Positions 3,873 to 50,115 of a stretch of 64,000 nt of DNA are shown piece by piece; the stretch's first letter is position 1, and the number at the start of each line of letters is the position of its first letter. The position numbers and the translations under genes are program-made. Source of the stretch: Ostrea edulis (lineage: Eukaryota); contig NC_079170.1 of assembly GCF_947568905.1 (NCBI RefSeq), forward strand, positions 15,810,001 through 15,874,000, written 5' to 3'. A model generated the notes under the pieces. The model worked only from the letters and a program-made list of their open reading frames with translations, did no database searches and was not told the origin of the DNA.

Positions 3873-5129
3873 TCAATATATATCATTCATTGAATTATTC
3901 ATAACATTGTCCGGTCGTTTTTCAAGTTCATAATATCTTTTGCTTTCATCACCTCCTCTTCGTGCTGCATTGTCGTTAAGATAACTCCCCGCTGATGATC
4001 GGCTACTTCCCCTTGAAGTTTTGTTGGTGATAGAATTATCTGAGGCACTACTCGTTCTTGAACTTGGTTTCTGAATGAAGCTTGTTGAATGAAAGTTGTA
4101 CACTTTATCACTGAGTTCATGATATACGTTCGAGCTCCTCGATCGGACACTTGTCGGGCTCTTGTCGTAAAGTGATGGTACTTGTGTTGCTTTTACAGCC
4201 ATCTGTTAACGAAAAATGTACGCGTCTACATATATCAGTAATTTAATATCTTACAATACTTCAGAGAGAGTTGTATATTACCTGAAATGATGCAAACATA
4301 CTCTTTCTCAATAAAGATCTATAATCTTTCAGTCTGTTTTAACTTCATTACCACGTGTTTCATGAGAGGTCTTAAAGTTCATGATTTTCAAACAAACTGT
4401 TAAGTCTATGCTAGCTAAGATAAGAAATTATAGTTCTTTTTACCTTGACAGTGTCTTCGACATCACTATACACATGAAAATTATCCAAAATGATTGCTTG
4501 ATTTGGGTTACTAAACATAGGTGGTGTTTGTGTGTTGCCTCTGCTAAAATATAAAAGATATTTTCCTTTTACACAGTTCGCAATATTCTGAAGGTACATC
4601 CACCGAAATAATTGATTAAAAAAAGAGCACAGAAAAAGGAATTGATTCTTTGTTTTCAAGTGACATAATGAGATAAACGGAGAAAGGAAGATATAATGAC
4701 ATCCTTCTCAGATACTGACTGTGATCTGTGCTTGTACCATCGTATGGTCAAAGTAAGTAAGATACCAACGACACAACCTGCTATTCCGCAGCTGAAGGCC
4801 AGAATCCAATCTAGACATAAGTTTGAAATGAAAATTTTAATAACCATACATACATTTATTTGCATTCATATTAATATTTACTCCTTTTTGTTTACATCAT
4901 ATCCATTTCAGGTTGATAAGAAGAAAAAAAATCCACGTATTTGAACAAAATGCATTCAAAATGTGAATGTTTACTACTAAATAATTATAAACGATAAAGC
5001 CTTATTTGACAACAGTTTGGCTGTTAAGGACTATTTTTTGTTGTGGAGAAATTTTGTAAAGATAACACTAAAAACTTTGATATCTTTTAATTATCAAACA
5101 GTGCGCTTTGGCAATTTGTTAATGAAAAG

Positions 5130-5197
<68 letters not shown>

Positions 5198-7458
5198 AAG
5201 ATATATCAAAGAGCACCAAGGTAAATTTTACAAATCGTGAGATCGTAATCTAACTAACTTTTAATTATGCAATATTTGCATAAAGTAGAATTTGTATAAT
5301 GAAATACTCGTCCTCTCTTTACATATAAAGGATTACCTGGATGGTTTGTTAAATCACTAATGCTTGAAACGCCAATTACAGTGATATTTTCTGCAAAATG
5401 ATACATAAGCAAAATGATACATCAACAATTTTTAGATCAAAGGTGAAGATAACGAACAGTGATCAATCTCATAACTCCTATAACCAATACAAAATAGATA
5501 TTTGGGCAAACACGGACCCCTGGACACACCAGAGTTCGGATCAGGTGCCTAGGAGGAGTAAGCATCCCCTGTCGACCAGTCACACCCGCCATGAGCCCTA
5601 TATCCTGATCAGGTAAACGGAGTTATCCGTAGTCGAAATCAGGATGTTAGGAGGGGCCTAACAATCGATATAAAACACGTCAGACAACATTTGATCCAAT
5701 GATAGGTTGTATTGATGGACTAGATCGTTATAACGACCATAGAATTTGCAAAATGCTGACTTCAATCGATGCTGTTGAAACTGGATCGCACGCACACGTA
5801 CGAATGCATACACATTACACACATTCTTTTTTTTTTAATCTGAGTACAATTTCAAACTCTGAACACTTTCTTGATTTTTTTCAGCCGTGTTTCTGGTCTT
5901 CGTCAGGCGTGAACCACAATTTGGATGGCTATGAACACCAAGAATTTTGATGGTTTTCTACGTCCCTCAACCTTCATAAATCGAGAGGCTGTGTATTCGA
6001 GCCATGTTCGCGCCATGATACAACAATTTAATATACTCCTTACTATATTCCTTACTATACCTAGGATATCGGTAAGATTGCTTCTTCGCCAAGCGCTTAA
6101 CACTTAGTGAGAATCATGGGCCTTTCGGATATGACATTAAAAACGGAGGTCCCATGTCACGGCAGGCGTTGGCAAGTTAAAGCACACTTACTGCCACGGC
6201 CCTGAGCGCTAACCATAAGTCTAAATCTGTTGTATATAATCTACAGCTGAATGTGTGTATCAGTATATCAGGAAAACATTCTCGACGAGACGTAAAACAA
6301 ACAATAAATTAATTAATTCATACAACGACACATAAAAAAGATTGTCTTTGAAAAACTTACCATTTTGATCTCTTAAATCACAGGTTATAGAGATCCAGGT
6401 CATTATGCACTTTGATATATTACAGTGTTTTGCGTTGAAAATGGAGGTGTTACTTCGTTGGTTCAACAGAAGCTCTAGGGTGTAGCTGACACAATGTGCC
6501 TCATCGTGTAAAGAATTGTTACTTTCAAATTGGCCGCTGCAGTTTATTGTACAGACCCTGGCTATAGAAATAAAGAAATACAGTGTTTAACGAATTTCCG
6601 AAGCTTAAGTTAAAATAATAATTACTGGTGAATGCAATATCTAAAATGATTTAGTTTGAACCATTTTCTTGAAGTTTGTCGTAAGGGCAGCGTTGTTGTG
6701 ATAATTCGTCGTGAATGTTGATTGCATCCTCAAAGCACCAGTTGCTTTTAAACCTGGGAAGTGGAATTCAGAAATCATCGTTAGGGTAACTGGGAATCAA
6801 ATTTAAAGGAAATCCATGGGTGCATATTTAAGTATGTCAATGAATTTTAGAAAGTATGGAACTCACGACGGCAAGAGAGTTGATGACATAGAGAATATAC
6901 CGCCTCCCGCTATCTTGACCCAAACCAATAAATCTGAAATAAATGTTGTCAAGAAATACTTACATATTATGAATTTATAAATGACAAGCTTGCCATATAT
7001 ATAAAAAAATTGTAGGATGACAACAATATGATTTGTATAAGATCTGCATGTTTTCAAAAGAAAACGACCCTGGATGTTGAGGAATGCAATAAAATGTTGT
7101 GCAGAAATTTCTATTTTTATATTCAAGCAACAATATAGTGTCGATACATGTATATTTATTAAAATCTCTACGTTCAGAATAAAGATGACTGCAAAACAAA
7201 GCATATATACTAAAGTATTAATAATATAAGCTTGGAAAAAATGAAACGCCTCATGATATATTACTCAGTTCTTTTGATTTCGTACTTTACCATGAATGGT
7301 AAATTCTAATAGAATTATGGATAAATTTAATCAGTGCATTCCAAAAAACTGATACATTTTTCATTATTAAATTGACTAGGAAAAATATATTTCCTGATCT
7401 TCAGGTAATTGATTAAATGACACCAATAGTGAAAAAATTGGGGTTTTGTGGGGGGAAG

Positions 7459-7506
<48 letters not shown>

Positions 7507-8930
7507 GTTATCGATACAGTATGTATGAAATGTGAAGATAACGAACAGTCCCTTATGTAGTATACATATATCCCTGTGAGTTCGAAGCAAAAGACACCAC
7601 TGAGTCGTCCACTTCTGCTTCATACTTAGATATTTTATTGAAAGTAGACATTAATGGCAAACTGACTGCTCAACTGTATATGACAAACGGGATGATTTCA
7701 GCTTCTCCATCGTCAACTTCCCATATTTATGTAGCAATATTCCATTATCACCTGCATATGGTCTTTATATCTCTCAATTGATTTGATAGGCAAGAGCTTG
7801 TTCTGTATTTGGTCAGTTTTTAAATCAAGGCCAGTTACTGACAAACAACTTGATGGTACAGGGGTTTCAACAGTCTCGATTGAAGTAGCATTTTGCAAAT
7901 TCCATGGTCGTTATAACGAACCAGTTCGTCAATACAACCTATTATTGGGTCAAATGCTCTCTGACGTGTTTCATACAAATTGTTAGGTCGTTCTTGGCAC
8001 ACTGATTTTGACTACGGATAACTCCGTCTACCTGATAAGGATATAGGGCTCACGTCAGATGAGACCTGTCGACAGGGATGCCTGCTCCTCCTAGGCACCT
8101 GATACCACTTCTGGTTTGTCCAGGGGTCCGTGTTTGCCAAACTCTGTATTCTGTATTGTTTATAGGAGTTATGAGATTGATCACTCTCCCTACCAAACCC
8201 TAGCTTGTTTCTGCTATAATGATATATTTTACATTAAAATTGATGACGAATTTACTGAATGCCAACACTGGATTTTCACTCAAATCTTTCGTCTTGCATA
8301 AATAGACACGAAGTTCGGTGTTTATATGACCGTATCTTTTTGTTTTTGATGTATATACTATGTACATTTATAATAAATATATCAATTTTTGCCGTGCATT
8401 TTTCAGGCAAATCTTTATGATATTTCATTAAACTTCACCTAAATGGATTTCCCGCTATTTTCTGCAGCCATGAAATTTGCTCTTGATGTACAAAAAATAG
8501 TGTGCCCGTTTTATTTCATAGAATTAACACTATCGACAAACAAATAAATAAACATAACACATTCAACATGGATTGAATATTCCTTTGCGCGTGGAACAAA
8601 AATGAAAAATTTGTCAATGCCCTCGAGAAATTGATTCATTTATGACTTTGCAATCAATATGATTGTGTCCATATTTATACGCTTAGTTATGCTTAGTTGT
8701 ATAAGATATGTCATCATTTTATTTTATAATCCTCCCTTAAAATCTAACCACCCACTGTCGGTTATGTTTGATTACAATTATGATGCTCTCACTGTGCGAG
8801 AAATACAAACCTAGAATTGTTAGAAGCTACTGCGTGAACAGAAAGATTCATTTTCAACTTTTTAATTTTTACACTTTATTTCTAATTAGTGACAATTGTA
8901 CTTACATAAACATCGCCTTAGATATGTCAT
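3873..8930 (-). CDS. Gene A1: single-pass type I membrane protein, Cys-rich ectodomain plus Tyr-motif tail, about 301 aa, 7 exons
   Basis: Exons: 8930-8906, 6933-6867, 6753-6662, 6561-6361, 4810-4720, 4543-4444, 4202-3873. All introns are GT-AG with phases 1,2,1,1,2,0 and the frame is open throughout: MTYLRRCLYLLVWVKIAGG...WCFEDAINIH...RCP...VCTINC...HCVSY...HCNISKC...TC...DWILAFSCGIAGCVVGILLTLTIRWYKHR...VYSDV...VYHEL...YYEL...NDIY*. Confidence 0.85.
5135..5196. repeat. (TA)n microsatellite
   Basis: Direct reading; the paralogous copy at 26350-26400 is shorter. Confidence 0.95.
5440..5790 (-). mobile_element. Penelope-like retroelement 3' fragment (paralogous copy at about 26646-26996)
   Basis: AAGGTGAAGATAACGAACAGTGATCAATCTCATAAC...GGAGGAGTAAGCATCCCCTGTCGACC...; the reverse complement encodes the RT C-terminus also seen at 7620-7986 and 43478-43728. 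Confidence 0.7.
6090..6232 (+). mobile_element. Mollusc SINE fragment (Meta/MESC-type central domain; copy at about 27296-27438)
   Basis: GGGCCTTTCGGATATGAC...AAAACGGAGGTCCCATGTCACGGCAGGCGTTGGCAAGTTAAAG resembles 18085-18325 and 46045-46290. The family name is from memory and was not searched. Confidence 0.55.
7459..7508. repeat. (GT)n microsatellite
   Basis: Direct reading; the paralogous copy is at about 28666-28703. Confidence 0.95.
7560..8185 (+). mobile_element. Penelope-like RT C-terminal fragment in intron 1 of A1 (truncated copy at about 28745-29092)
   Basis: Encodes YLDILLKVDINGKLTAQLYDKRDDFSFSIVNFPYLCSNIPLSPAYG...FCKFHGRYNEPVRQYNLLLGQMLSDVFHTNC, with an internal stop. Confidence 0.8.
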
Positions 8931-9335
8931 TGTCTCTTTCCAAATATCGCCTCAATTGCTTAATTTTTACGATGGAAATTTCTAATAGTAAGGAAAAGGT
9001 ATTAACACAGCTTTTTACACATCAAAAGCCATGGAAAACACTGAACAAGTTCTTCCTGGTCAAACAAGATATATGCGAGTTTGTGGAATTACCCATCCAT
9101 GGAGTTAATACTGCGGAAGCAATTAAAAGTTAAATGTTTCTTTCCAGAGGTTAATGTTACATTATTTTTCTATTTCTATAGGAACCATATCTCCATCTAC
9201 ATCAGAAGCATTTGCAAAAGTCAGGAATCCTGCTATTTCTGTTAGATCAAGGGAAGGGATTATTCTCACTGCTGATAGATCACACAAAAGAGAATTTTCT
9301 TGTTCTATTTCATTTTTCACGGAATGGATGATAAA

Positions 9336-9860
9336 GTGAAGATAATGAACGGTGACCAATCTTATAAATACCATACGATTACAAAATTGAGAGTAGGTCA
9401 AATCCTTGGGTATACTAGGTGTGGGATCTGATGTCTAGGAGGAGTAAGCATCCCCTGTTGACTTGTGACACCCACCGTGAGCCCTATATTTGGATCAGGT
9501 CAATGGAGTAATCCGAAGTCAAAATCAGTATGTAAATGATGACCTAGCAATTAGTATGAAATACGTCAGACAGCGTTCTGCCGTATAATAGGTCGTACTT
9601 GCAAATTAGAACATCATAATGACATAGCATTTGCAAAGTGCTGACTTTAAACGAGACAGTTGAAATACCTGAAACATCAACATTACTTGTCATTAATCTC
9701 TCTCGAGTTAAAAATCGATCATACGCAGAAGATTTTTCCGCATATCAATCAGTTGAGAGATGTAAAAACCATCTTCAGGTGATGAGGGAATATTACTACA
9801 TGACTATGGGAAGGTGATGCTGGAATAGGTGATGTCATCCCGTTTGTCGTGAATTGATCA
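9336..9860 (-). mobile_element. Penelope-like fragment (paralogous copies at about 23043-23560, 30183-30700, 36668-37150)
   Basis: Same family as 5440-5790; it follows the 70-bp unit region in every paralogous block. Confidence 0.7.
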
Positions 9861-9904
9861 GATATGGAAGACTCTATTTTCTGATATTATCACCTACTTT
9901 CGGA

Positions 9905-10033
9905 AGGTCGGTGGTCTCTTCCCAGGTGCATTGTATCCGGGTTCTCTCTTCCACCAACAAAAACTGGGCGCCACCATATAACTGAAAAATTGTTGAATAG
10001 GGCGGAAAACATCAAATCAAATCAAATCAAATC
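9905..10033 (+). mobile_element. SINE 3' end with (AAATC)n tail (copy at about 30750-30878)
   Basis: ...TCCACCAACAAAAACTGGGCGCCACCATATAACTGAAAAATTGTTGAATAGGGCGGAAAACATCAAATCAAATC... It is absent from the paralogous blocks at about 23.6 kb and 37.2 kb, so it is a later insertion. Confidence 0.65.
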
Positions 10034-11109
10034 ATATTATCACCGGTGTTAGAACGACTTTACTCAATCTGAGAGAGTCATAGAGCTTTTTTGTCTTTCA
10101 CTGCTGCAACGTCTTTGATTGTTTATGTGATGACTATTTTGAATGACTTTTAGTGTCGGTCAAACAGTAATTAATGATCTTAGACGGATAGTCTAAAATT
10201 GTCAGTTAGATTTTAATGAAAGTGGTGAAAGTGCTGTTAGCAGTTCTCAAAAATGTGTAAAAGGGTATTTTCTAAAAGACTTCCGGATTCTTGACAATTA
10301 AATATAACATTTCTATTTCCCAATCCTAAACAATTTTTCATTCACTTAAGAAATGAAAGTTATAATTCTATATCTGATGCATGTATCAAATGAAAAACTG
10401 GACGGAAAACTTCTGAAAGGAAATTTTCCGTTTCACAATTTGTCAGCCGTATTGAATTTCTCGGTGCTTTTACCAACGCATGTATTGTACATGGTGTAGA
10501 AGATGTACACCAAAATGTGTACACCTTTGCATTTGATTACGAAAAGGTGTACACTTTGTGGTCGGTGTAGACAAATCAAGCACACCCTTAGTAAAGGAGA
10601 CTGTAAAACAACGAATTGCAATATATCAAATACATACCATACAGAATTCCGAAAATTCAAAAGGTTAAAATCTCGCTAAATTATAAAACTATGATATTTG
10701 ACATATATTGCGCTATCTTTCTTTGACAGACTAACTGCATACGTTAAGAATATAGACAATGTAACGCTATAATGTAAAGTTCATATCTTAATGTCAATGA
10801 TATTGACATGAGATGCATTGAAGGATATATTGCACTGGTCAATGAGAAACTACACACGAGTTATTGAAACTCGTAATTGTAGAATCCATGTCTATCGCAA
10901 CGGGGACTCTAATCCACGAGCTTAACTTCTCCAAGCGTGGGATGTAACTCTGATTTCAATAAATGCTCCATGGACCTCATCACCAATAAATAACATTTAG
11001 CCATGGGTGTATGTGTTCTTTTGTCCGCTCATTTGATTAGCTGATTATTAAGATTTTTACGCCCTCTCAAAAATGGAAAGGTCAAGCTAACAAACTGTTA
11101 TCGATGAAA

Positions 11110-11430
11110 GGTGAAAATAACGAAAAGTAATCAATATCATAACTCCTATAAGGAAATCAAAATAAAGAGTAGGGCAAACACGGACCTTTGGAACCAGGTG
11201 CCTAGGAGGAGTAAATATCTTCTGTCGACTGGTCACACTCGTTGTGAGCCCTATATCTCGATCAGACAAACGGGGTAATTTGTAGTCAGAATCAGTGTGT
11301 CACGATTGGTTTACCAATCGCAGAATTTGATGCAATGACAGTTTGTATAAACTATTGGCAAACTAGTTTGTTATAACGACCATAGAGTTGGAAAGATTGT
11401 GACAGTAAACGAGGCTGTTGAAACCCCTGT
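11110..11430 (-). mobile_element. Penelope-like 3' fragment (copy at about 31950-32270)
   Basis: GGTGAAAATAACGAAAAGTAATCAAT...GGTGCCTAGGAGGAGTAA...ATAACGACCATAG. Confidence 0.65.
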
Positions 11431-11819
11431 AGCATTTTTTGGAATGGCCGGATGTTTTTCACATGCTTCAATCATATACACTCTGGTCAATCTATTAGTG
11501 ATGGGCCTTTATCGTGCTAAAATCCTCTATGACATGGGATCTCAGTTTTAAATATTCGAAATACCCATGACCTATACTTTTAATGCCAAACACTAGGAAT
11601 AGTTACTACCCATATTTAACCATATGCATTCTCAATTTCTCATCAAACATCCTCACTACTGAAGAACACAATACATTGGTCTACATTTGCAAATCTAGAT
11701 CTTATGCTAAAAAGGGCTTCATACGGACGTCAAATCACAAAATCAAACAAACAATGCAGGATTTATGACATTTTACTGCACATATCTAAAGCTACGTATA
11801 AATCATAATGTTTGAACCT

Positions 11820-14800
11820 TCAGCTACAACCATTATCGTTTTGTATTAATAAATATTCTTTTCCCAATGCATAGTATTTATCACTTCCTGCACTACCTGT
11901 TGGCGAAGTTTTCGTCCGGTCCTTTGACTTTATAGAAGAACTCTCTGCATGAAATAAAAATGAATCTAAAGAAGGATTTCCTGAATGGATGATAACGAAT
12001 TTCCCAAATGAGCTGCCACTTTGAAGTTCGCTCTCCTTTCTCTCGAGTTTACAGCTGTATGCTAGGACATCGCTGGACAAAAACACACTTACATCCATGC
12101 CCATACTCTTCCTCTCTTCCAATCCACCTAGGTGGTGGTAAATGTTTTCTCATGATCTAGAACTCGATGAACTATCATCTTTGTAAGAAGGAACTTGAAT
12201 AGCTTTATTCATCACCTAGTGAGAGAAGAAAAATCACAAAATTCAAATCAATGAAATATTTTTCTCGTTTGGATTACGACCAATTAATGAAAATGAACAG
12301 TGATTAATCTCATAAATATCATGGCAATCTAACATCAAGGACATGCCCAATGCACATTTCCTATACATGATACAGGTGAGATCGAGTGACTAGGAGGAAT
12401 AAGCACCCCGTTTTGACCGGTCACACCCGTCGTGAGTCCTGTATCTTGATTATGTAAATGGAGTCAGCCGTATTCAAATCGACACAGAAAGAATGTAGAC
12501 TACATTTGACTTTATGACATGGAGTATTATTATACCACAGTATGAGAATTCCACGCAACGCGTAATGTGATTAGTCTAGACGGTCACGTGCCAGGGATGA
12601 CAACACTTCATATCTCCCTCTCAAACATCATATCTCCCTATCATATTTAGCCCTTGGGCAGACTCGTGCAATTTCCATAAATTTAACGTCAAGGTAGACG
12701 AAGTCTATTGTGACGTCACAATAAGTCATTCTACTTTCACAGTTCGTAAGGCAGAAAATATGTGGGTCTCTAATACACAGTTGAATCGTATGGTTTTGGT
12801 TGATACAAAAACAAGCAAGTAAATTAGCATTTAAGGAGAATGGAAATACAAAAACTGGTTATCATATCACTGTATTTCGTATGATTTTTCTTGGGTGAAT
12901 AAATCTTCATATCTCCCTCACTATCATGCAATAAATGTATAATAGCAAATAAGATGGTTTTAACAACCGTAGCCTTTACAAAGTGTTGCCTGTAAACAAG
13001 ATAGACAAGACTTGTCCATGTCTTCGCTTTTAAAGATCACCATAAAAACATTTCTTTTAAAATCTATGACTCGGAATAATGTACTCTAAAATTATCTTCG
13101 ATACCAGCATATTCTGCCTCTAATGGATTGATGATGACTCTGCCCTCAGGTAAACCACTTCTCTCTTGGTGACTAGGCTGATAGGATACTGGTGACGGGA
13201 ATCGATTGCTAAACAAATAAAATCATTGATACTATTTGATAATTTTAAATGTAATCACTGAGTCAAAACATCATGTTTCTAGATAGCGCAGATTTCATGG
13301 AAGTTTTCTAAATCTAAATTTTTCCTAATTTATTGAAACGCTGAACAGTTGTGTTGTATGTACATAAAAATGAAGCCACGGACTATGGAAATTAAACTAA
13401 AATGGGAAAATGGAGGTTGTGAAACAACAAAAATGAAATAATTCCACAAGATACATATAACTTTTTTATATGACGATCAGTTTTCTGTGTATATGGGAAG
13501 AGAAATGATATATGTACTAAACTAGTAGGAAACAGTTTAATTGGTGAAGCAAAATATAAGAGAATCATGAATCTCTTGTAAAATATCAGAGAATCATGAA
13601 TCTCTTGTAACAAGTGCATATATATTTTCAAATGAGGGAATGCCTTAGAGGACAGGACATACTCTTTGTGCCGATTCAGGAGGTTGTAAATCACACGTAG
13701 GATTCCAATTCCAAAGAGACACCCGACAACGAAGCAGGTCACAATTAGGACAGCAATTATACCTGGACCTTGGATTAAATAAAAGGAAAGTTCTTACAAA
13801 CGCTAAATGGTTATCAAATATATCAGAATGATTTTGATATGAAATTGGAATGTAATAACTTACCAAGACATTCATTTTCATTCTCGTTGTTGTGTTCGAA
13901 TATATCGAGACGGTCTGTATTCTTGCCCTGCGTCCAACATTCAATGATTATGTTTTCGATTATGCACTTTTCAATACCACATAGACTGTCTGTCATCTGC
14001 GTTGATTTCGTTTCATTATAGTGAAAATTGATTTTGTATTCAACACAATGAGATTGCTCAAATAGATCATCATTGAATACATATATTGCTTTGCATGACA
14101 CCGAACATGTATTGTTACCTGAAAAAAAAATATATCGTGTTGATGTCATTGTTTTCTTTCATCAAAAAGTGGCAAATAATGAAAGAAATCGTTATGAAAT
14201 GATCCTACCTTTGTGTCTATTTGATATATCCGGTAGAGGACAGTTTTGGTCGGGCATCGTTGCATGCACTTGTAAAGCTTGTTCCAAACATATTTTTCTG
14301 AAGTTTTACAAAACATATTGGTACCGTATAAGTTTTACATTGAAAAGAAACGTATGAGGTGAAAACAAATGTGTATGTATCTAATATGATCGTATTAAAC
14401 AAGAATTAGAATCTTATATATCGTTTAAACACACCTTTCATTTTGGGGAAAGCACAGGACTTTCTTAGGAATATCCATCGTGAAGCACAGAATAACACCT
14501 GCGTTGTATTGAAATAATGTTTGGATGAAATAAAGATGAAATGAATTCTGATAAAAAATAAAGATGTAAAAGATTGAATCATAATCAATAGATCCCATAA
14601 CGGATTTATGCTACAGAAAATAGTTTTTTGTTTGTAAATCAGGATTTAGGTTATGAAAGGCCTGGTTTAAAACCAGAATTTCACAAATATAACAGGTCAT
14701 TAAGTCGAATGCTCTCTGACGTGTTTCATACCAATTGTTAGACGGATCTTTACATACAGAGTTTTACTACGAATTACTCAGTTTATCTGATAAGATATAG

Positions 14801-15366
14801 GGCATATAACATTTATGACCGTTGAACAGACAATATTTACTCCCCCTAGACATCTGCTCCCAATTCTGGTGTTTCCAGGGGCCCGTGTTTACCAACTCAT
14901 AATTTTATATCATTTATTGGATTCAATATAACAAACAGTGAGGAATCACACAATTCTATATTACACTGCATCATATCACTTTGTGAATCATCTCAGATCA
15001 CTAAATAAAGTTAGTAGTGTTATCCACTGAAACGCAGAATTCATGGCTCTGAGGGACATCTTCAGATTGATTCATTCATGACTTTGCAATCAATATGATT
15101 GTGTCCATATTTATACACTTAGCTATACTTAGTTGTATAAGGTATCTCATCATGTTATTTCATAATCCTCCCTTAAAAGCCAACCACCCACTGTCGGTTG
15201 TGCTTGATCAGAATTATAATGCTCTCACTGTGCGAGCAATACAAATCTATAATCGTTAGAAGCTATTGCGTGAATAGAAAGATTCATTTTCAACTTTTAA
15301 ACTTCCACACGTTATTTCTAATTAGTGACAATTGTACTTACATAAACATCGCCTTAGATCTGTCAT
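11820..15366 (-). CDS. Gene B1: family member with a premature stop in the last exon (242 aa truncated; 352 aa if read through)
   Basis: Exons: 15366-15342, 14498-14435, 14297-14209, 14118-13864, 13768-13663, 13208-13085, 12215-11820. Phases match A1. MTDLRRCLCVILCFTMDIPKKVLCFPQNERKICLEQALQVH...NCP...TCSVSC...HCVEY...LCGIEKC...ECW...NECLGPGIIAVLIVTCFVVGCLFGIGILR...EYAGIEDNFRVMNKAIQVPS...SRS* with TGA at 12152-12150 (CGA in B3). Confidence 0.8.
14690..14910 (+). mobile_element. Penelope-like 3' fragment in intron 1 of the B genes (copies at about 35515-35735, 40535-40760)
   Basis: GAATGCTCTCTGACGTGTTTCATACCAATTGTTAG...CCAGGGGCCCGTGTTTACCAACTC. Confidence 0.65.
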
Positions 15367-17639
15367 TGTCTCTTTCCAAATATCGCCGCGATTGCTTAAT
15401 TTTTACGATGGGAATTTCTAATAGTAAGGAAAAGGTATCAGCACAGCTTTTTCCACATCAAAAGCCATGGAAAACACTGAAAAAGTTCTTCCTGGTCAAA
15501 CAAGAAATACGCGAGTTTGTGGAATTACCCATGCATGGAGTTAATACTGCGGAAGCAATTAAGAGCAGTTTTCTGTAAGGACCAAAATATTGCGGCACGC
15601 ACTGAAAAATTTTCCACTATAAATGTCGTCATTCAATTGAAATACATAAACTCTTTAAAAAATATTTGTACACCTATTCTGAAAAGTGACTCGTTTCCAT
15701 AGCAACAGGCTATTTAAATAGAAAAAACAGGAAAAATGGAGTTTTGGGAATTTTTCACTTCAATTTATTATATCGCGAATAATTGACAAGGAATTTTATG
15801 CTACATCCTGAGACAAAGTAGTAACAATCTTGATCAGTATGTAAATTTATCTGGAAATTGTATCATTATTGTACCACAGCTCATAATTCAGACTCAAATG
15901 ACCAGTTTTACTGTGTACTTTGACCAACTCCTGAGCAAAAAGCCAGCCATATGGAAGATAATAAAATATAAATTTAAAAAGAAGGTAAATCAGTTATATA
16001 ATGCAGATAAAAAAAATCAATGGGCAAATTACATTTTATAATAGAAATTTGGCATGGAAAATATGAATTTGTTGAATTTGCACATTGAGTTATCTCCCTT
16101 TGCGGAATTTCTAATGTAGGAGATAATAAGTAGTGTTATTGTTAACAGGAGGGAAAGGAAAGAAATGCAGAAAACATGTGTTTTTAGGGTATTTTAAACA
16201 TCTTTGACCATTACTATATATGTACTGGATGTATTCAAGTGTGAAGGAGTTGATAAATACACACTGCATGTAGTGAAGAGGGTTTCCTGAAAAATTAACT
16301 TCATTGAATATGAATTCAAAGCTCAGCTTGTGTCTACATGTGTACATATATGCACCCGATTTACGCTGTTATATGGTTCGTTCTGTATTTTCCCATTTAT
16401 TGACGGACGCTTGCAACCGACATGTTTAATCAACAAACACTGCTACTACGAAAAAAGTGTATTCATGCCAGTTGGAGAACACAGGTTTACGTAAGTACTG
16501 CTTGTAGATACATTGATAATGTAACATTACCTCACAATGACACGATCTGTTTCTCAGTAAATTAGTGATCAAGTAAATGCATGCAAAATTCATGTTATTT
16601 CACTGGACCAGGGTGAAAATATAATAAATATTTTCTAATGGAGATAATGCTTTTGAGACAGAAGGAGGGAGGGGGGTAAAAGACGGGCGAGGGGGTTGTA
16701 TTGTAATCTTAAAATAAGTAATATACCTGACTGGTTTATTTAACATTAACAATGTTAATTTCACCTACTTTTCAATATTTAAGGTTAAGATAAATGTTAT
16801 ATTTATTCTAATAGTGTTCAAAACATTTGTTCATCACGTACGTTAAAAACAGATTGTTCTATTCATGTGAATTATGAAAATGAAACTTTCAGTTTCTCTC
16901 CCCCCCCCCTCTCTCGTGATATAATAACAGTGATGATAATGCTTTTAAAAAAGAAACAATGTCTGTAAATTATTTCAATGACCACATGCCTTATATAGTT
17001 TGTGATGAATTTCATTAAATTTTGACAAATTGTGCGTTTTTCTTCTTCTAGGATTTGTGTTGGAAAATGGAGATTCTAGAGAATTTATCGAATTCAAGTG
17101 ACAACAATAATAAGGTACATGTACATGTATATGCTATTGTATTACTTGAAATGTGCACCTGTATAATATGTGTACAGTTGTTCCATTGACAATGCATATC
17201 TATATAAATAATAAACTATCCCTTCTCATAATTATTTACCATAGACCCAAATTTCAAAATAATTTGCTCAAGGTCACAGATAACAGAGAATAGAATCATT
17301 TGTTGCTGCATCACTTTTTGAATTAGTTAATGTCAAGGTTTCAAAATATTTAGAGTTGTAGCTTTGTATCAGAGAGGCATGAATCAATACACTAAATGCA
17401 CAAACATGTACTTACAGGGGGACCAGAAAGTGTGCATGAACCATAAACTGAGGTCACTTGCAGATATCATTAAAAGATGTGGTCTATATTGACTTTTTTA
17501 AGTGTATGATACCATAACATCACACATACTGCGGGGTGATATGGGGGGGGGGGGGGGGCGTATGTAATCCAAGACCGTCAGATGTTCGAGGTTAATATTG
17601 GTTGGTTATGGTTGTTTGTTTTACATTCTATTAAAAGAA

Positions 17640-26345: not shown

Positions 26346-26403
<58 letters not shown>

Positions 26404-28663: not shown

Positions 28664-28706
<43 letters not shown>

Positions 28707-36193: not shown

Positions 36194-36482
36194 TGTCTTT
36201 TTCCAAATATCGCCTCGATTGCTTAATATTTACAATGAAAATTTCTAATAGTAAGGAAGAGGTATCAGAACAGCTTTTTCCACATCAAAAGCCGTGGAAA
36301 ACACTGAACAAGTTCTTCCTGGTTGAACAAGAAATATGCGAGTTTGTGGAATTACCCATCCATGGAGTTAATACTGCGGAAGCAATTAAAAGTTAAATGT
36401 GTCTTTCCAGAGGTTAATGTTACATTATTTTTCTATTTCTATAGTAACCATATTTCCATCTATATCACAGGAGCATTTGCAA

Positions 36483-36625
36483 AGGTAAGGAATCCTGCCA
36501 TTTCTGTCAGATCAAGAGAAGGGGTTATTCTCACTGCTGATAGATCACACAAAAGTCAGGAATCTTGCTATTTCTGTTAGATCAAGGGAAGGGATTATTT
36601 TCACTGCTGATACATCACACAAAAG
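36483..36625. repeat. Two copies of the 70-bp unit upstream of B2
   Basis: A diverged pair of the same unit found as 27 copies at 21109-22998 and as single copies at about 9220 and 30067. Confidence 0.85.
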
Positions 36626-38122
36626 AGAATATTCTTGTTCTATTTTATTTTTCACGGAATGGATGAGAAAGTGAAGATAATGAACAGTATACTGATCCTA
36701 GGATATACTACGTGTGGGATCTCGTGTCTAGGAGGAGTAAGCATCCCCTGTTGACCGGCCACAACCACCGTGAGCCATATATTTGGATCAGGTAAATGGA
36801 GTAATCCGAAGTCAAAATCAGTATGTAAATGATGGCCTAGCAGTTAGTATGAAACACGTCAGACAGAGTTCTGCCTTATGATAGGTCGTACTTGCAAATT
36901 AGAACATCATAATGACATAGCATTTGCAAAGTGCTGACTTTAAACGAGACAGTTGAAATACCTGAAACATCAACATTAGTTGTCATTAATCTGTATCGAT
37001 TTTAAAATCGAACATGCGCAGGACATCCTTCCGCATATCAATCAGTTGAGAGATGTAAAAACCATCTTCAGGTGATGAGGGAATATTACTACATGACTGA
37101 GGGAAGGAGACGCTGGAATAGGTGATGTCATCCCGTTTGTCGTGAATATCAGTGGTCTGATTGACGTTAGTGTCTATGTTCATTAAATAATGAAACGATT
37201 GAATAATCCAACTATTGCTCAGATATGGAAGACTATTTTCTCATATTATCACCGGTGTTAGAACGACTTTACTCAATTTGAGTCATAAGAGCGTGTTTGT
37301 CTTTCACTGCTGCAACGTCTTTGATTGTTTATGTGATAACTGTTTTGAATGAATTTTAGTGTCGGTCAAACAATAATCAATGAAAATTGTCAGTTAGATT
37401 TTAATGAAAGTGATGAAAGTGGTGTTAACATATTTCAGAAATGTGTAAAAGGGTATTTTCTCAAAGACTTCCGGATTCTTGACAATTCAATTTAAAATTT
37501 CTATTTCCCAATCCTAAACAATTTTTCATTCACTTAAGAGATGTAACTGATAAATCTTTATCTGATGCATGTATCAAACAAAAACTGGACGGGAAACTTC
37601 CGAAAGGAAATTTTCCGTCTCACAAATTTTCAGCCATATTGAATTCCTCGGTGCATTTACCAATACATGCCATGTATATGGTGTAAAAGATGTACACCAA
37701 AACGTGTACACCTTTGCACTACGGGAAGCTGATTGTTTTCTCATGCTTCAAGCGTATACACTCTGGTCAATCTATTAGTGAGGGGTCTTGATCGTGATAA
37801 AATCTACCATGATACGGGATCTCAGTTTTAAATATTCGAAATACCCACGGCCTACACTTTTGATGCCAAGCACTTGGAATAGTTGGAACCCATATTTAAC
37901 CATATACATTCGCATCAAATATCCTGAAGAACACATAACATTGGTCTAGATTTGCAACACTAGATTTAAGCTGGCAATAGTGCAAATTCAAGAGAGCTCC
38001 TCATACGGACGTCAAGTCACAGACACAAACAAATTTATTTATCAAACAACAAACAATACAAGGTATTATGACATTTTACTTCAAATATCTAAACCTACAT
38101 ATGAATTAAAATGTTTGGACCT

Positions 38123-41119
38123 TCAGCTACAACCATTATCGTTTTGTATTAATAAATATTCTTTTTCCAATGCATAGTATTTATCACTTCCTGCACTACC
38201 TGTTGGCGAAGTTTTCGACCGGTCCTTTGACTTTATAGAAGAATTCTCTGCATGAAATAAAAATGAATCTAAAGAAGGATTTCCTGAATGGATGATAACG
38301 GATTTCACAGATGAGCTGCCACTTTGAAGTTCGCTCTCCTTTCTCTCGAGTTTACAGCTGTATGCTAGGGCATCGCTGGACAAAAACACACTTACATCCC
38401 TGCCCATACTCTTCCTCTCTTCCAATCCACCTAAGTGGTGGTAAATGTTTTCTCGTGATCTAGAACTCGATGAACTATCTTCTTTGTAAGAAGGAACTTG
38501 AATAGCTTTATTCATCACCTGGTGAGAAAAGAAAAATCACGAAAATTCAAATCAAAGAAATATTTTTCTCGTTTGGATTACGACCAATTAATGAAATTGA
38601 ACAGTGATTAATCTCATAAATATCATGGAAATCTAACATCAAGGGCATGACCAACGCACATTCCCTAGACATGATACAGGTGAGATCGAGTGACTAGGAG
38701 GAATAAGCGCCCCCTTTTGACCGGTCACACCCGTCGTGAGTCCTGTATCTTGATTATGTAAATGGAGTCAGCCGTATTCAAATCGATACAGAAAGAATGT
38801 AGACAACATTTGACTTTATGACATGGCGTATTAGGAAATAAGATGGATTTAACAACCATAGCCTTTACAAAGTGTTGCCTGTGAACAAGATAGATAAGAC
38901 TTTTCGATGCCTTCGCTTTTAAAGATCATTATAGAATATTTCTTTTAAAATCTATGGCTCGGAATACTGTACCCTAAAATGATCTTCGATATCAGCGTAT
39001 TCTGCCTCTAATGGATTGATGATGAGTCTGCCCTCAGGTAAACCACTTCTCTCTTGGTGACTAGGCTGATAGGATACTGTTGACGGGAATCGATTGCTAA
39101 ACAAATAAAATCATTGATAATATTTGATAATTTTAAATTTAATCACTGAGTCAAAACATTATGTTTCTAGATAGCGCAGATTTCATGGAAGTTTTCTAAA
39201 TCTAAATTTTTCCTAATTTATTGAAACGCTGAAAAGTTGTGTTGTATATACATACAAATGAAGCTACGAACTATGGAAATTAAGCAAAAATGGGAAAACG
39301 AAGGTTGTGAAACAACAAAAATGAAATAATTCCACAAGATGCATATCACTTTTTTATATGACGATCAGTTTTCTATACATGTATATGGGAAGAAAAATGA
39401 CCTATGTACTAAACTAGTAGAAAACAGGTTAATTTTTGAAGCAAAATATCAGAGAATTAGGAATCTCTTGTAACAAGTGCATATAGATTTTCAAATGAGG
39501 GAATGCCTTAGAGGACAGTACATACTCTTTGTGCCGATTCAGGAGGTTGTAAATCACACGTAGGATCCCAATTCCAAAGAGACACCCGACAACGAAGCAG
39601 GTCACAATTAGGACAGCAATTATACCTGGACCTTGGATTAAATAAAAGGAAAGTTCTTACAAACGCTAAATGGTTATCAAATACATCAGAATGATTTTGA
39701 TATGAAATTGGAATGTAATAACTTACCAAGACATTCATTTCCATTCTCTTTGTTGTGTTCGAATATATTAAGCTGGTCTGGATTGTTGCCCTGCGTCCAA
39801 CATTCAATGGTTATATTTTCGATTATGCACTTTTTAATATCACATAGACTGTCTGTCATCTGTGTTGATTTCATTTCATTATAGTGAAAATTGATTTTGT
39901 ATTCAACACAATGATCTTTATCGAATAGATCATTATTGAACACATATATTGCTTTGCATGACATCGAACATGTATTATTACCTAAAATAAAAAAAAATAT
40001 ATCGTGTTGATGTCATTGTTTTCTTTCATCAAAAAGTGGCAAATAATGAAAGAAATCGCTATGAATAGATCCTACCTTTGTGCCTATTTGATAGATCCTG
40101 TAGAGGACAGTTTTGGTCGGCCATCATTGCATGCACTTGTAAAGCTTGTTCCAAACATATTTTCCTGAAGTTTTACAAAACGTATTGAAAAGAAAAGTAT
40201 GAGGTGAAAACAAATGTGTATGTATCTAATATGATCGTTTTAAACAAGAATTAGAATCTTATATATCGTTTAAACAAACCTTTCATTTTGGGGAAAGCAC
40301 AGGACTTTCTTAGGAATATCCATCGTGAAGCACAGAATAACACCTGTGTTGTATTGAAATAATGTATGGATGAAATAAAGATGAAATGAATTCTGTTGAA
40401 AAATAAAGATGTAAAAGATTGAATCATAATCAATAGATCCCATAACGGATTTATGCTACAGAAAATAGTTTTTTGTTTGTAAATCAGGATTTAGGTTATG
40501 AAAGGCCTGGTTTAAAACCAGAATTTCACAAATATAACAGGTCATTAAGTCGAATGCTCTCTGACGTGTTTCATACCAATTGTTAGACGGATCTTTACAT
40601 ACCGATTTTTACTACGAATTACTCAGTTTATCTGATAAGATATAGGACCCATAACATCTATGACCGTTGAACAGAGAATATTTACTCCCCCTAGACATCT
40701 GATCCCAACTCTTGTGTTTCCAGGGACCCGTGTTTACCAACTCATAATTTTATATCATTTATTGGATTCAATATAACAAACAGTGAGGAATCACACAATT
40801 CTATATTACACTGCATCATATTACTTTGTGAATCATCTCAGATCACTAAATAAAGTTAGTAGTGTTATCCACTGAAACGCAGAATTCATGGCTCTGAGGG
40901 ACACAAATGATTTCCATACCAACGAAGATTTAAATGAAAGAGATCCTACATCAACTTTAGCAGTGTATCGACAAGTAAACTAATATTCGCCCTGTCCCAT
41001 GTTAGACTTATAAGCTTACCCACATCAATATAGTGTGTAGTTATTGTTATCACCGTACCAAAATTTATATAATCACAAACAACAACAAACTCACCAATTA
41101 ATGTGTATCCCATGTCCAT
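38123..41119 (-). CDS. Gene B3: full-length B-type receptor, about 352 aa
   Basis: Exons: 41119-41095, 40343-40280, 40164-40076, 39981-39727, 39631-39526, 39096-38973, 38518-38123. Exon 1 is 25 nt (MDMGYTLI+G) with a GTGAGT donor. The tail contains EYADI, IYHHL, YYAL and EYLLI. A TATA-like TATATAAA lies at 41218-41211. Exon 1 is the least certain part. Confidence 0.82.
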
Positions 41120-43477: not shown

Positions 43478-43975
43478 ATATTCCATTATCACCTGCATAT
43501 GGTGTTTATATCTCTCAACTGATTCGATACACAAAAGCGTGTTCTGTGTATGGGGAGTTTGTAAATCAAGGCAAACTACTGGCAATCAAGTTGATGGTAC
43601 AGGGGTTTCAAAAGTCTCGATTGAAGTCAGCATTTCCCAAATTCTATGGTCGTTATAACGATCTAGTTCGTCAATACAACCTATCATTGGGTCAAATGCT
43701 GTCCGACGTGTTTCATACCGATTGTTAGACCGTTCTTGACACACTGATTTTGACTACAGATAACTCTGTATACCCGATCAGGATATAGGGCTCATGGCGT
43801 GTGTGACCGGTCGACAGGGGGGGGGGGTGGGGGTGGGTGGGTGTGCTTACTCCTCCTAAACGCCTGATACCACCTCTGGTGTGTCCAGAGGTCCGTGTTT
43901 GCCCAACTCCATGTTTTGTATTGGTTATAGGAGTTATGAGATTGATCACTGTTCGTTATCTTCACCTTTCAAGTA
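43478..43975 (+). mobile_element. Penelope-like RT C-terminal fragment and 3' end
   Basis: NIPLSPAYGVYISQLIRYTKACSVYGEFVNQGKLLAIKLMVQGFQKSRLKSAFPKFYGRYNDLVRQYNLSLGQMLSDVFHTDC* (ORF 43438-43728). Confidence 0.85.
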
Positions 43976-46290: not shown

Positions 46291-46540
46291 CAATATATCC
46301 TTGTATGGAGACAATGTATTTGAATTGTGTTTGTTGACTTTTAATATTGGATATATTTACTGTATAAAATACTGGAAGATAAGAAAAGGAAAATGACATT
46401 CCTCTTGGTCTAAAAGCTATGAAGCTTAAGTGGGTAAAATACGACTGTTTATTCAAGATATCTGATACAAGAATCATAGAAACAATTTTGATTGAATTGA
46501 CCGTGATCTAAAAAAAATCAAGAACTTTAAAAATGTTCTT

Positions 46541-49500
46541 CTAATTAGAATTCGTATCAGATGGTTGTAGTATTAGATATTCCTTCTCTAGTGCGTGGTA
46601 TCTGTGACTTTCATCACTCCCTGTTGGGGACGTTTTTGTGTCATTGCTTGACTTTGACGAAATACTACCAATGTGAATCACTACCGATCTCAAAGAAGGA
46701 CTTCCTTTTTGTAGTTCCCTGACTGTTTTACTATCTTCGTATTCATATGCGGGAAACTCACTTGAGAATAAAGTGTTACGCTGTAATTGCATGCCATAGT
46801 TCAACGAATCATCTGTTTCATTTAAATGGTGGTAAATTGTTTCCTGTGACCTTGAATTCAGTGACGAATCTTCTTTATCTGATGGTACTTGAGTTGCCTT
46901 GTGTATATTCTACAATAGTAAAGACAATGTTGATTAACAGCGTATTAAACCAGAAATCACTTTGAAAAGTCTTTATATGTCAAGTACGGAAATCCTTCTT
47001 TAAAAAGACATAAAAAATGTTCAGCTGATGAGTCTTAGATTTAGATTCAAATTAGGAATATGCATGGATTTTATTGATATCATCTTTGAAATATGTGAAA
47101 TGTTGGGATTATTCTTCGGGTTATATTTGATGGACAAAGAATCATCCATATAGGAATGATGAATGCCAACCTTGAAATGTTCCTCTATGTCACTATATTG
47201 TGCATCTTGAGAATTAATTTCTATCCTTCCATCATGTGACTGAGTATCACTGGCATGTCGCTGACGGAAATGTACGGAAGTCGCTATCTGTGTCTTGAGT
47301 ATTCTGAAACAAATGACGGTACATAGCAATCTGATCTTGTGTAACTTTGATATTGAAAGAATAACAATTGCTTATGATTCGTCAAAATAATATGAGGTCT
47401 TGAAGACATATTTTCTACTTTATGAAAAGAAAAGAATTTTAATATTGGGGTTTCATATCACTTTCTTGATCACCAAATATATTCAATTATACAAAATATT
47501 CATACATTTAGTAATTACATAGAGAAGAAATCACACTCGTACATCTAGTTATAGTGTTGGTAAATTGTAGTTAAAATTATTTATTTCATTAAAATAAAAA
47601 TGAAATATATACCCATTATGACGACGCCTAAGACAAGAAATGATTTGGAAGAAAACCGATCCTAAAAGTACTCCGCCTGTCGCGCATCCTAGGACCAAGC
47701 CAACTATTGTGGCCTTACCTTTAACAATACAAAAAACATAGAATAGGACCAAACCAACTATTGTGGCCTTACCTTTAACAATACAAAAAACAAAGAATTA
47801 TGGTTAAAACTACACCATGAAGAAAATAATAATTACTGTTAAGAACGTCAGGCAAACTATTTTTAAAACAGTATAAGTATGGAAAATCCAAACATTTGCA
47901 ACATAGAATCAACTTTATATACAATACTTACTTATACACTCATTATTCGACTTCAGCGTATCATTTTTTCCCGTTGTTAGATTATTCAACAATTTGTAAT
48001 TTGATGTGTCATTCACAATATTCCAATTGTCATTCTTCCAGCAGGTAAATCTGATAAAATCCACACTACATTGTTTGATTCCACACGGGAAATTCTTGAA
48101 AGTCGATGATGGGGCACCAGTAAGATTAAAACTAATGTTGTAGCCAATGCATCCTTTGTGTCCTATCCTGACGTCATACTGTCCCATGCATGTATACCTG
48201 CAGGGTTTTACTAAAGAGAATAACAGAATGTAAGATTTGACTAACGGTAATCTAATAAATGGCAAGATAAAGGTAACGAGTAGGGATAATATCAGAACTA
48301 TAAGGAATATAAAATTAAGAGTTGGACAAACACGGAACCCTGGACATACATATACCAGAAGTGGGGCCAGGTATATCTGTGATCAACTTGATAGTAGTTT
48401 ATTTGTAATTGTACGACCTGGTTTTGATAAAGGAAATATTGATTATTTGATATAACATAGCATGGAACATTTCAAATGTCCATCCATTCCCAGCTCACCC
48501 GATTAAACGTTTGTCAGAAGTTGTTCTTATATTCAAAATCATATTCAGAAGTTGTTCTAACACATATTAGTTGGAATATACAAGTTAATCAAAATAAGCA
48601 TACAATGATTGGCTATTTGATTTATAAATCTACAAACTAGTTAAACCTAAATCAAGGGAATTTGAAATAATATCCAAAGAATAAAGTGTCTAGGAAAGGA
48701 AAACGTGACTTACCTCTACTCTCAAGTAGTCTTTCTGGACATTTACCATCGTTAAGGACGGAGTGGATCTCGAGAGCATGCTCTAAACACATAGTGCTAC
48801 AATGAAAGTAACGCTGATAGCAATAACAAGTGAGATTCAGTTGTAAGTCACATAAGGATCTTTATAAGTTTATTGTTATCAGAACATATGTGAAAATTCA
48901 GCAGGATATAGATGGATTTCATCACATAATTATATTCCATCATGCTGTTACACGAACAAAGTAGCTTACAGTACAGTACCTTTTAAAATTGGGAACAGCT
49001 TCTGTTTGGATTTGAAAGTGGAGCATGATACTATAAATACCTACAAAATGGCCAAAAAAACCTCTTAAAGATGTTCATACCTAAATTTTGTAGGATTGTC
49101 AATTGTTTTGGAAGCATATTTTTGATTTATCAGTAAAAGGGGAATATGAAACTAGAAAGAAAAACAAAGTGAATAGTGCTTGTTATTGAACCACAGTGCA
49201 TTAACCTTTGTGTACGTAAAATCTACTAACGATAATATAATTGGTTATTTTCGTTGATTTCAATAGAACATAGGCAATAAATATGATTCATTGCATCAAA
49301 TAGATATCTACTAATGTCCTCTAACAATATCGATATAAAACGTTTCATGCAATTAGATTCCTTGGACGAATTTGGCTCCACTTTTTTGGCACGCTGTTTT
49401 TGGCTATATTTAGCTCTAAAGCTTCATAGTTATTTCGGATTTCAAACATTTCGGTTGAGCATCACTGAAGAGACATTATTTGTCGAAATGCGCATCTAGT

Positions 49501-50115
49501 GCATCAAAATTGGTACCGTATAAGTTTTACATTGAAATCAATTAATGTCTTTTTGCATTTAACGTACGGGAAAACATATCATCATGTAGAATTTGAGAGT
49601 TCAAAAGAACATCCTAGGAGTATCGTCAGTTTTTAAAATGGCGCAAATGATAGATAGTCTTGTTTCAAGATCCAAGATGGAACTTAAAAAGTGGGGCTAA
49701 TGGATCAAAGTTTTGAATTATTGACCAAAGTGATAAATTGTTACATAAAATTTCGGGTAAATTGATGGAGACGTTTTCGAAAATCGATGTATATCAATCG
49801 AAGTCCTGCATTTACATTTTCATTAGTTTCCGGTTTTCACCACTTTTATAAAAAATTACAAAATTGAATTATACATCTAGGAATATAAATATTGAGGATA
49901 AATCCTGATAAAACATGCAGATTTACAGCTTCTTAATTAAACAAACATGTCACCACAAAATGTCATCCTTTCCCAAACCCTTTCAAAATTTGAATTCACA
50001 TACATATCATCAAATGGATACGTATAAGTATTAATTGACAATTGATATTTACATGTTTAATCAGAAATATCATGCATATAATAGAATACTCACAGGTACG
50101 TATGAAATCTTTCAT
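46541..50115 (-). CDS. Gene C: divergent family member, about 350 aa
   Basis: Exons: 50115-50094, 49040-48980, 48796-48714, 48210-47932, 47718-47613, 47303-47171, 46909-46541. Phases match the other genes. MKDFIRTCIYSIMLHFQIQTEAVPNFKSTMCLEHALEIH...KCP...PCRYTC...GCIGY...PCGIKQC...TCW...NECISKATIVGLVLGCATGGVLLGSVFFQIISCLRRR...QYSDIEEHFK...KATQVPS...IYHHL...YHAL...EYLIL. Confidence 0.85.
47697..47804. repeat. 54-bp tandem duplication spanning the acceptor of the gene C transmembrane exon
   Basis: CAACTATTGTGGCCTTACCTTTAACAATACAAAAAACA occurs at 47701 and 47755. Confidence 0.92.

Follow-up and report, generated by a model that had tools for sequence, protein, structure and literature searches.

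An undescribed family of type I membrane proteins encoded by tandem genes in the oyster Ostrea edulis

Gene models of the array

The stretch analyzed here, 64,000 nucleotides (nt) of Ostrea edulis DNA (contig NC_079170.1, positions 15,810,001 to 15,874,000; hereafter the window), contains six members of an undescribed family of type I membrane proteins, lying in a tandem array on the minus strand. The window is AT-rich and free of N, and all coordinates are positions within it. The genes stand in a row as A1-B1, A2-B2, B3 and C (Table 1), with a third unit outside the window, which agrees with the tandem array described in a first-pass annotation of this DNA. Every motif listed in that annotation was found at six places, on the minus strand only and in identical order. 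It had also held that the genes are not visible as such among the open reading frames (ORFs), and the bacterial-style ORF list indeed catches last exons only (3873-4202, 25089-25418, 11820-12122, 32662-32964 and 38123-38518).

The models were built from stop-free segments, simple donor and acceptor scoring, direct reading of junctions and tblastn of database proteins, and were then rechecked. All introns in all six models are GT-AG, and the intron positions fall at homologous residues across the three lineages A, B and C. The first exon measures only 22-25 nt and closes in phase 1 in every gene, at a good GTRAGT donor. The agreement between lineages had been taken as independent. It does extend over three lineages that share homologous intron positions, but self-comparison shows that A1-B1 and A2-B2 are two copies of one 12-kilobase (kb) unit, 98-99% identical, so that the locus offers three old lineages and not six independent witnesses. 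Part of the same unit recurs at 37736-40903 with 89-99% identity. Taken together, the models represent real, spliced genes in a genuine tandem array.

The seven-exon structure with intron phases 1,2,1,1,2,0, first ascribed to all six genes, holds for B1, B2, B3 and C, but not for A1 and A2. These two carry an extra 54-nt exon, in phase 1 at both ends, which encodes ENITVIGVSSISDLTNHP between the ectodomain and transmembrane exons. An A model of seven exons, lacking this stalk exon, also stays in frame. Because RefSeq XP_055999458.1 uses the 54-nt exon and Saccostrea A-type proteins conserve a matching stalk that contains IGS, lineage A is most likely best described as an eight-exon gene of 319 amino acids (aa). 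Exons 4-8 of A1 equal RefSeq XP_056001551.1, and the join of its exons 1, 2 and 3 matches RefSeq XP_056001550.1. The latter model (LOC125656681) is itself a chimera that matches 8930-8907, 6931-6866, 6761-6663, 4203-4114 and 1005-820. In it, A-type exons 1-3 run on into the last exon in another frame, then into a downstream segment and the start of the last exon of the next copy; the model probably reflects read-through or mis-prediction across tandem copies.

The genes were also said to splice into open frames. This is true of A1, A2, B3 and C, whereas B1 and B2 share an in-frame TGA in the last exon, which at codon 243 removes two of the three conserved tyrosine motifs of the tail. The truncated forms keep the ectodomain, the transmembrane helix and the first tyrosine motif, which there reads YAGIED instead of YADIED. 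B1 and B2 are either decaying copies or tail-less variants.

For B3, the exon boundaries have a single GT-AG solution within 4 nt of their seeded positions, and its candidate exon 1 is suggested by the 25-nt length and the junction glycine that it shares with the Saccostrea echinata orthologue. A ~500-base-pair (bp) module that carries exon 1 (MTYLRRCL) lies upstream of A1, B1, A2 and B2 (8630-9126, 15066-15562, 29477-29973 and 35890-36555; 91-93% identity), the copy of B1 being 92.6% identical to that upstream of A1. The module is not found upstream of B3, which has its own candidate exon 1, and an antisense ORF of 121-126 aa over it looks fortuitous. In gene C, a 54-bp tandem duplication (47690-47798) copies the acceptor and the start of the transmembrane exon, so that two acceptors, 47772 and 47718, lie in the same frame; with the former, upstream one the protein would gain 18 hydrophobic residues.

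Table 1. Positions of the family members and related features in the 64,000-nt window
Feature	Position	Strand	Exons	Remarks
Gene A1, intact, 319 aa, 8 exons	3873-8930	-	8930-8906, 6933-6867, 6753-6662, 6561-6361, 5390-5337 (stalk exon), 4810-4720, 4543-4444, 4202-3873	GT-AG, phases 1,2,1,1,1,2,0
Gene B1, 7 exons, nonsense-truncated	11820-15366	-	15366-15342, 14498-14435, 14297-14209, 14118-13864, 13768-13663, 13208-13085, 12215-11820	GT-AG, phases 1,2,1,1,2,0; TGA at codon 243
In-frame TGA in the last exon of B1 (SRS-stop-ENIYHHL)	12150-12152	-		Same stop in B2 at 32992-32994 and in a third B copy outside the window
Gene A2, intact, 319 aa, 8 exons	25089-29777	-	29777-29753, 28139-28073, 27959-27868, 27767-27567, 26596-26543 (stalk exon), 26026-25936, 25759-25660, 25418-25089	Exons 2-8 identical to RefSeq XP_055999458.1 (LOC125656260)
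Gene B2, 7 exons, same nonsense codon (32992-32994)	32662-36193	-	36193-36169, 35322-35259, 35143-35055, 34960-34706, 34610-34505, 34050-33927, 33057-32662	Structure as B1
Gene B3, intact, 352 aa, 7 exons	38123-41119	-	41119-41095 (candidate exon 1), 40343-40280, 40164-40076, 39981-39727, 39631-39526, 39096-38973, 38518-38123	Phases as B1
Gene C, intact, 350 aa, 7 exons	46541-50115	-	50115-50094, 49040-48980, 48796-48714, 48210-47932, 47718-47613, 47303-47171, 46909-46541	GT-AG, phases 1,2,1,1,2,0; borders agree with the Saccostrea cucullata orthologue
Segmental duplication unit 1 (A1 and B1)	3491-15562; second copy 24709-36389			Self-BLAST, 98.2-99.0% identity over 4.4 and 7.3 kb
Degenerate C-like last-exon fragment with internal stops	63851-64000	-		tblastn with C residues 300-350, 52% identity, E 3e-7; upstream exons beyond the window end

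Ectodomain and predicted fold

All six models encode a single-pass protein of type I topology, with a hydrophobic N-terminus, an ectodomain of 8-9 cysteines and 2-5 N-glycosylation sites, and one hydrophobic helix of 22 residues. The helix is followed on the cytoplasmic side by basic residues (R/K/H) and a tail of 150-184 aa, and in the A2 protein AlphaFold also predicts it as a transmembrane helix. In the family alignment eight ectodomain cysteines are conserved, within MC.E.AL.IH, CP, C-x3-C, CV, C-x-I-x2-C and F.C. A ninth cysteine adjoins the membrane in B, C and the Crassostrea proteins, and is not present in A. Two glycines of the transmembrane helix, G155 and G159, are invariant and four residues apart, forming a GxxxG motif.

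The ectodomain is a movable, shuffled module, because Magallana gigas XP_065937517.1, whose ectodomain is 76% identical to that of a Crassostrea angulata family member, joins it to another stalk and tail. Where the family has its own stalk and tail, this protein carries a Ser/Thr stalk of mucin-like character, followed by an unrelated tail that is rich in tyrosines and includes one IDYDHL, resembling an immunoreceptor tyrosine-based inhibitory motif (ITIM). Loss of the tail also recurs. In Crassostrea gigas XP_034305485.1 the same ectodomain stands on a tail that lost all three conserved tyrosines.

AlphaFold2 modeled the C. angulata ectodomain from a 12-sequence alignment with a predicted local distance difference test score (pLDDT) of 85-95 over residues 6-100, with four of the five models in agreement, and placed its elements in the order β1-α1-α2-β2-β3-β4-β5. 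A second run on the A2 protein of the window, which is ~28% identical to the C. angulata query, gave the same element order with similar confidence. In the A2 model the transmembrane helix reaches a pLDDT of ~88-90 and the tail, at 30-50, is predicted to be disordered.

Searches with these models and sequences returned no known family or fold. Foldseek gave no convincing neighbor in the PDB (best E 0.65), and its best matches were at E 0.13 with a TM-score of 0.24 in the AlphaFold DB clusters and at E 0.19 in the Swiss-Prot models; in none of the three sets did the TM-score exceed 0.24. No match to the ectodomain models was found with VIA-align or in the ESM Atlas (shape TM-score <0.4, feature scores <0.6), and a profile search of PDB sequences gave chance matches only (lactate dehydrogenase, MS5a); such an absence is not in itself proof of a new fold. 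A cystatin- or NTF2-like fold, the first guess from secondary structure, was dropped since no such chain matched convincingly.

Alternatively, the ectodomain could be a highly diverged PAN/Apple module, in which case the family would be no orphan but a new offshoot of an established domain superfamily. UniProt automatically names the C. gigas paralogue A0A8W8M2X6 (XP_034305485.1) "Apple domain-containing protein", and the series C-x3-C ... C-V-x-[YF] ... C-x-I-[KS] bears a loose resemblance to the Apple core cysteine pattern. We nevertheless consider this relationship very unlikely. No Pfam PAN model matched in 13 members even at E up to 5-10, no such protein appeared in the profile search of PDB sequences, and no such chain was among the best matches listed by Foldseek or VIA-align. 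Moreover, AlphaFold sets the C-x3-C pair in a β-strand, whereas in PAN domains a helix carries it, and the cysteine spacings are longer.

Family range

An exhaustive search of 1.84 billion representatives with a HMMER profile of the last exon, which encodes the tail, recovered 13 proteins, and all of those with a traceable source come from oysters. Profile and single-protein word searches likewise matched only in Ostrea, Saccostrea and Crassostrea/Magallana, without any named protein among the matches. Exact look-ups traced the sources to O. edulis (GCA_947568905.1, OX387710.1), S. echinata, S. cucullata and Crassostrea/Magallana, where each is called "uncharacterized protein". The family thus appears to be restricted to Ostreidae, with ~13 clusters, none of them named.

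The window genes belong with the oyster LOC105342943-like proteins. Full-length E-values range from 1e-41 to 1e-146, and alignment and tree agree. The RefSeq loci of the same family are LOC125656260, LOC130048603 and LOC130047856 in O. edulis, LOC105342943 in C. gigas, LOC128160496 in C. angulata, LOC111105875 and LOC111105946 in Crassostrea virginica, LOC133203517, LOC133203518 and LOC133203520 in S. echinata, and LOC134268789 and LOC134281766 in S. cucullata. These models share with the window genes the eight conserved cysteines, the GxxxG transmembrane helix, KAIQVPS, [IV]YHxL and YYALEK, and differ from our models in annotation, as they come without name, domain or literature. The full-length relatives from C. 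gigas, C. angulata, C. virginica and Saccostrea measure 306-335 aa and have no precomputed Pfam domain.

Pfam/hmmscan on the 13 family members gave no family above threshold, which includes the common immune ectodomains (Ig, C-type lectin, LRR, EGF, SRCR, C1q, FREP). In the searchable literature, 12 gene and protein identifiers of the family and three SRA run identifiers occur in no paper, and a topical search gave nothing relevant. The family had been called unrecognised, and a confident match to an already described family was the outcome that would have overturned this; the Pfam, PDB-sequence and fold searches produced none, and the description holds. An origin as a viral glycoprotein, for example of a malacoherpesvirus, was rejected, as none of 110 pattern matches in IMG/VR was confirmed by tblastn.

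Evolution of the array

In the maximum-likelihood tree, two Saccostrea proteins join O. edulis A (support 100/100), and another two from that genus join O. edulis C (94/99). The existence of these orthologues indicates that lineages A and C predate the split of Ostrea and Saccostrea. The tree does not resolve how B branches with respect to the proteins of Crassostrea and S. echinata.

The array continues outside the window (OX387710.1 15,777,684-15,800,202, the DNA around the third RefSeq A copy). A third B-A unit there is 99.4% identical to window positions 1298-16416, and its B copy shares the TGA of B1 and B2. An A copy that is more diverged is interrupted by a separate stop, likewise in the last exon. 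When fragments are included, at least ten members of the array can be counted in O. edulis. Its recent growth came from duplication of A-B units of 12-15 kb at 98-99% identity. The three A-B units differ no more than oyster alleles may do, and the mosaic structure of B2 speaks against a simple haplotype artefact. In exons 2-4 and introns 2-4 (34505-35322 against 39526-40343) the sequences of B2 and B3 are 100% identical; elsewhere B2 follows B1. An identity tract confined to the ectodomain part is consistent with gene conversion or unequal exchange.

Divergence between B1 and B3 reaches 9% in exon 4, against 1-3.5% in the introns on either side of it. The ratio of nonsynonymous to synonymous substitution (dN/dS) in the ectodomain of this pair is 0.51 and thus not above 1. 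The array had been described as rapidly diversifying, and this needs to be narrowed: recent local duplication of A-B units is evident, but lineages A and C are old and the ectodomain ratio does not exceed 1.

Tyrosine motifs of the cytoplasmic tail

Within a tail that otherwise drifts, the family alignment shows invariant positions, namely Y, D and E in Y.D.E, K..QVPS, Y-H-x-L, several serines and Y..LE, with the tyrosine, proline and serine columns invariant. Three tyrosines are conserved, the acid-flanked Y[AS]D[IV]E[DE], then [IV]YH[HEL]L and Y[YHF]x[L]E. All three YxxΦ motifs occur in every full-length member that has this tail, except in the C. gigas paralogue XP_034305485.1 with its degenerate tail. 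For lineages B and C and the Crassostrea lineage, sequence identity is higher in the tail (44-64%) than in the ectodomain (34-45%).

A regular-expression census over the six window genes and 11 homologues confirmed the tail as rich in tyrosine motifs, as the first-pass annotation had it with its multiple YxxL, but did not reveal a classical immunoreceptor tail. No immunoreceptor tyrosine-based activation motif (ITAM, YxxL/I-x6-12-YxxL/I) was matched in any member; YYAL-x3-YLLI comes closest, with spacing too short. The ITIM ([SIVL]xYxx[ILV]) is not conserved and occurs only as VIYNLL at the membrane boundary in lineage B and as SEYADI in one C. virginica protein. The immunoreceptor tyrosine-based switch motif (TxYxx[VI]) is absent from all window genes, and TEYADI or TQYADI appears only in C. 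gigas, C. angulata, one Logan and S. echinata proteins. As regards a possible single-tyrosine ITAM with an upstream acidic cluster (hemITAM), the first tyrosine stands in E-x-E-Y-x-D-I in lineage B and Crassostrea, where C has D-A-Q-Y and A has F-H-V-Y.

Functional interpretation

On balance we are slightly inclined to regard the locus as an Ostreidae-restricted tandem array encoding a dimerising, tyrosine-phosphorylated type I receptor. The structural part of this statement is near-certain, and for its signaling part the odds are roughly even. In such a model, a type I glycoprotein would lose a cleavable N-terminal leader and expose an ectodomain of ~100 residues with eight conserved cysteines, which may bind an extracellular ligand. 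A short, variable and glycosylated stalk connects this domain to the transmembrane helix. Pairing would proceed through the GxxxG motif of the helix and, in lineages B and C, perhaps also through the ninth, membrane-proximal cysteine. The disordered tail of ~150-180 residues would then be phosphorylated on its tyrosines and recruit proteins with SH2 domains. The array itself grew by the recent duplication of 12-15 kb A-B units together with exchange of ectodomain exons between B copies.

Several observations weigh against this model. Of the plan given in the first-pass annotation (signal peptide, Cys-rich ectodomain and one transmembrane helix), the ectodomain and the helix stand, but the signal peptide is putative, being read from hydrophobicity alone, and the leader is weakly hydrophobic in C. 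The alignments behind the AlphaFold models are shallow (12-13 sequences). Phosphorylation, SH2 recruitment and dimerisation are suggested by motifs, and in lineage A the tail is less conserved than the ectodomain (38% vs 47% identity).

Furthermore, the YxxΦ motifs would fit endocytic sorting signals equally as well as SH2 docking sites. The family may accordingly comprise sorting, endocytic or adhesion receptors and not signaling immunoreceptors, with the YxxΦ motifs, the acidic clusters (DIEE, YKEDSSS) and a C-terminal motif of the EKEYLL type acting as adaptor signals (AP-2 or GGA-like). Consistent with this, every conserved tyrosine is in a YxxΦ motif, acidic residues come after the first of them, KAIQVPS leads into a serine-acid cluster, lineages B and C end in ExxxL[LI], and neither an ITAM nor a conserved ITIM is present. 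The dileucine-like ending, however, is not conserved in Crassostrea or in lineage A, and three strictly conserved tyrosines in an otherwise drifting, disordered tail exceed what a single signal needs. We rate a sorting or adhesion role as unlikely.

The model of a phosphorylated receptor must also accommodate what is seen of transcripts and of decay. No spliced O. edulis contig or transcript was found for the window genes in Logan contigs or in a search with XP_055999458.1, which gave RefSeq entries only. The Logan contigs that contain the last exon of gene C are colinear with the genome, introns included, and thus unspliced or genomic. The genes had been taken as unseen, but RefSeq already holds the A copies as "uncharacterized protein", in models without exon 1 or starting at an internal methionine; for B3 and C, profile and single-protein word searches found no RefSeq protein, and the present analysis supplies gene models for these two intact members. 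The cytoplasmic dN/dS between B1 and B3 is ~1.1, and two independent lesions hit tails, the TGA common to the B copies and the stop in the diverged A copy. A cytoplasmic ratio near 1 together with two independent tail lesions means that part of the O. edulis array is clearly decaying.

If this decay were general, the array would for the most part be a graveyard, its recent duplicates having little function left, and its open frames would reflect the youth of the copies. The nonsense codon common to B1, B2 and the third B copy, the tail stop of the diverged A copy, the cytoplasmic ratio near 1 and the lack of a RefSeq protein or spliced contig all point in that direction. Yet the old lineages A and C remain open over seven to eight exons with intact GT-AG junctions and with all conserved cysteines and motifs, the ectodomain ratio is 0.51, and a Crassostrea orthologue is present as cDNA-like contigs. 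Two Logan contigs of ~1.3 kb carry an uninterrupted 990-nt ORF (329 aa) of a Crassostrea-type member with untranslated regions, and these look like complementary DNA (cDNA), which would indicate expression and splicing in a relative. Such a graveyard is, in our judgment, quite improbable.

As for the dimerising receptor that we prefer, its architecture is familiar (a single-pass receptor with tail tyrosines) and its ectodomain is unfamiliar. The immune or allorecognition role proposed in the first-pass annotation was drawn from architecture, and the tails contain no ITAM and no conserved ITIM; we do not adopt the label except as a hypothesis. The hemITAM receptors CLEC-2 and Dectin-1 are type II C-type lectins with short N-terminal tails and appear to signal as dimers. 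Their single YxxL/I after acidic residues is similar to E-x-E-Y-[AS]-D-I-E-E in the oyster proteins, and signaling as dimers would fit the invariant GxxxG. Unlike them, the oyster family is of type I, with an orphan ectodomain and two further conserved tyrosines, and binding of Syk is putative. Hydractinia Alr1/Alr2 and Botryllus fester/uncle fester resemble the array in having tandem single-pass receptors with variable ectodomains, tail tyrosines, truncated variants and exon exchange. Those arrays, however, use Ig-like or SCR domains and are highly polymorphic, whereas the oyster array has an orphan domain and its main lineages are old orthologous groups.

Having no adaptive immunity, oysters depend on receptor repertoires that are expanded and specific to their lineage, and the known ones mostly reuse familiar domains such as C1q, FREP, TLR and lectins. 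O. edulis is under pressure from Bonamia and Marteilia. Against this background, the window might hold an oyster-specific locus for recognition of non-self or pathogens. Its products would combine a new disulfide-rich fold, a GxxxG dimer, a hemITAM-like acidic YxxI and two phosphotyrosine sites, with full-length and truncated copies exchanging ectodomain exons in the manner of paired immune receptors. We regard this fuller reading as quite doubtful. If the family signals, it would represent a new receptor class with possibly a new protein fold; if it does not, it would be one more taxonomically restricted orphan family, of a kind that is common in molluscs. A confidently predicted orphan fold, a conserved tail and active tandem dynamics make it a reasonable experimental target.

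Other features of the window

Several repeats accompany the array. A 70-bp satellite of 27 copies at 97% identity (21109-22999) lies between the two duplicated A-B units, and a two-copy relic of it is found at 36480-36625, just upstream of exon 1 of B2. A repeat of ~350 bp, with 75-87% identity between copies, occurs in the A intron and in the B3-C spacer (5435-5781, 7864-8185 in inverted orientation, 26641-26987 and 43605-43969); it is probably a fragment of a transposon and contains an ORF that includes KFYGRYNDLV.QYNLSL. Near the end of the window, a 27-bp/113-bp minisatellite of ~17 copies at 73% identity (62782-63256) yields a repetitive ORF on the plus strand.

Pfam searches on 10 flanking ORFs gave nothing above threshold. 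On the strand opposite to the array, a 112-aa ORF at 58591-58929 (+) contains repeated NYLDPVP, DYLTP and DYLEP tyrosine motifs. It is without a Pfam match and may be an exon for the tail of another kind of membrane protein.

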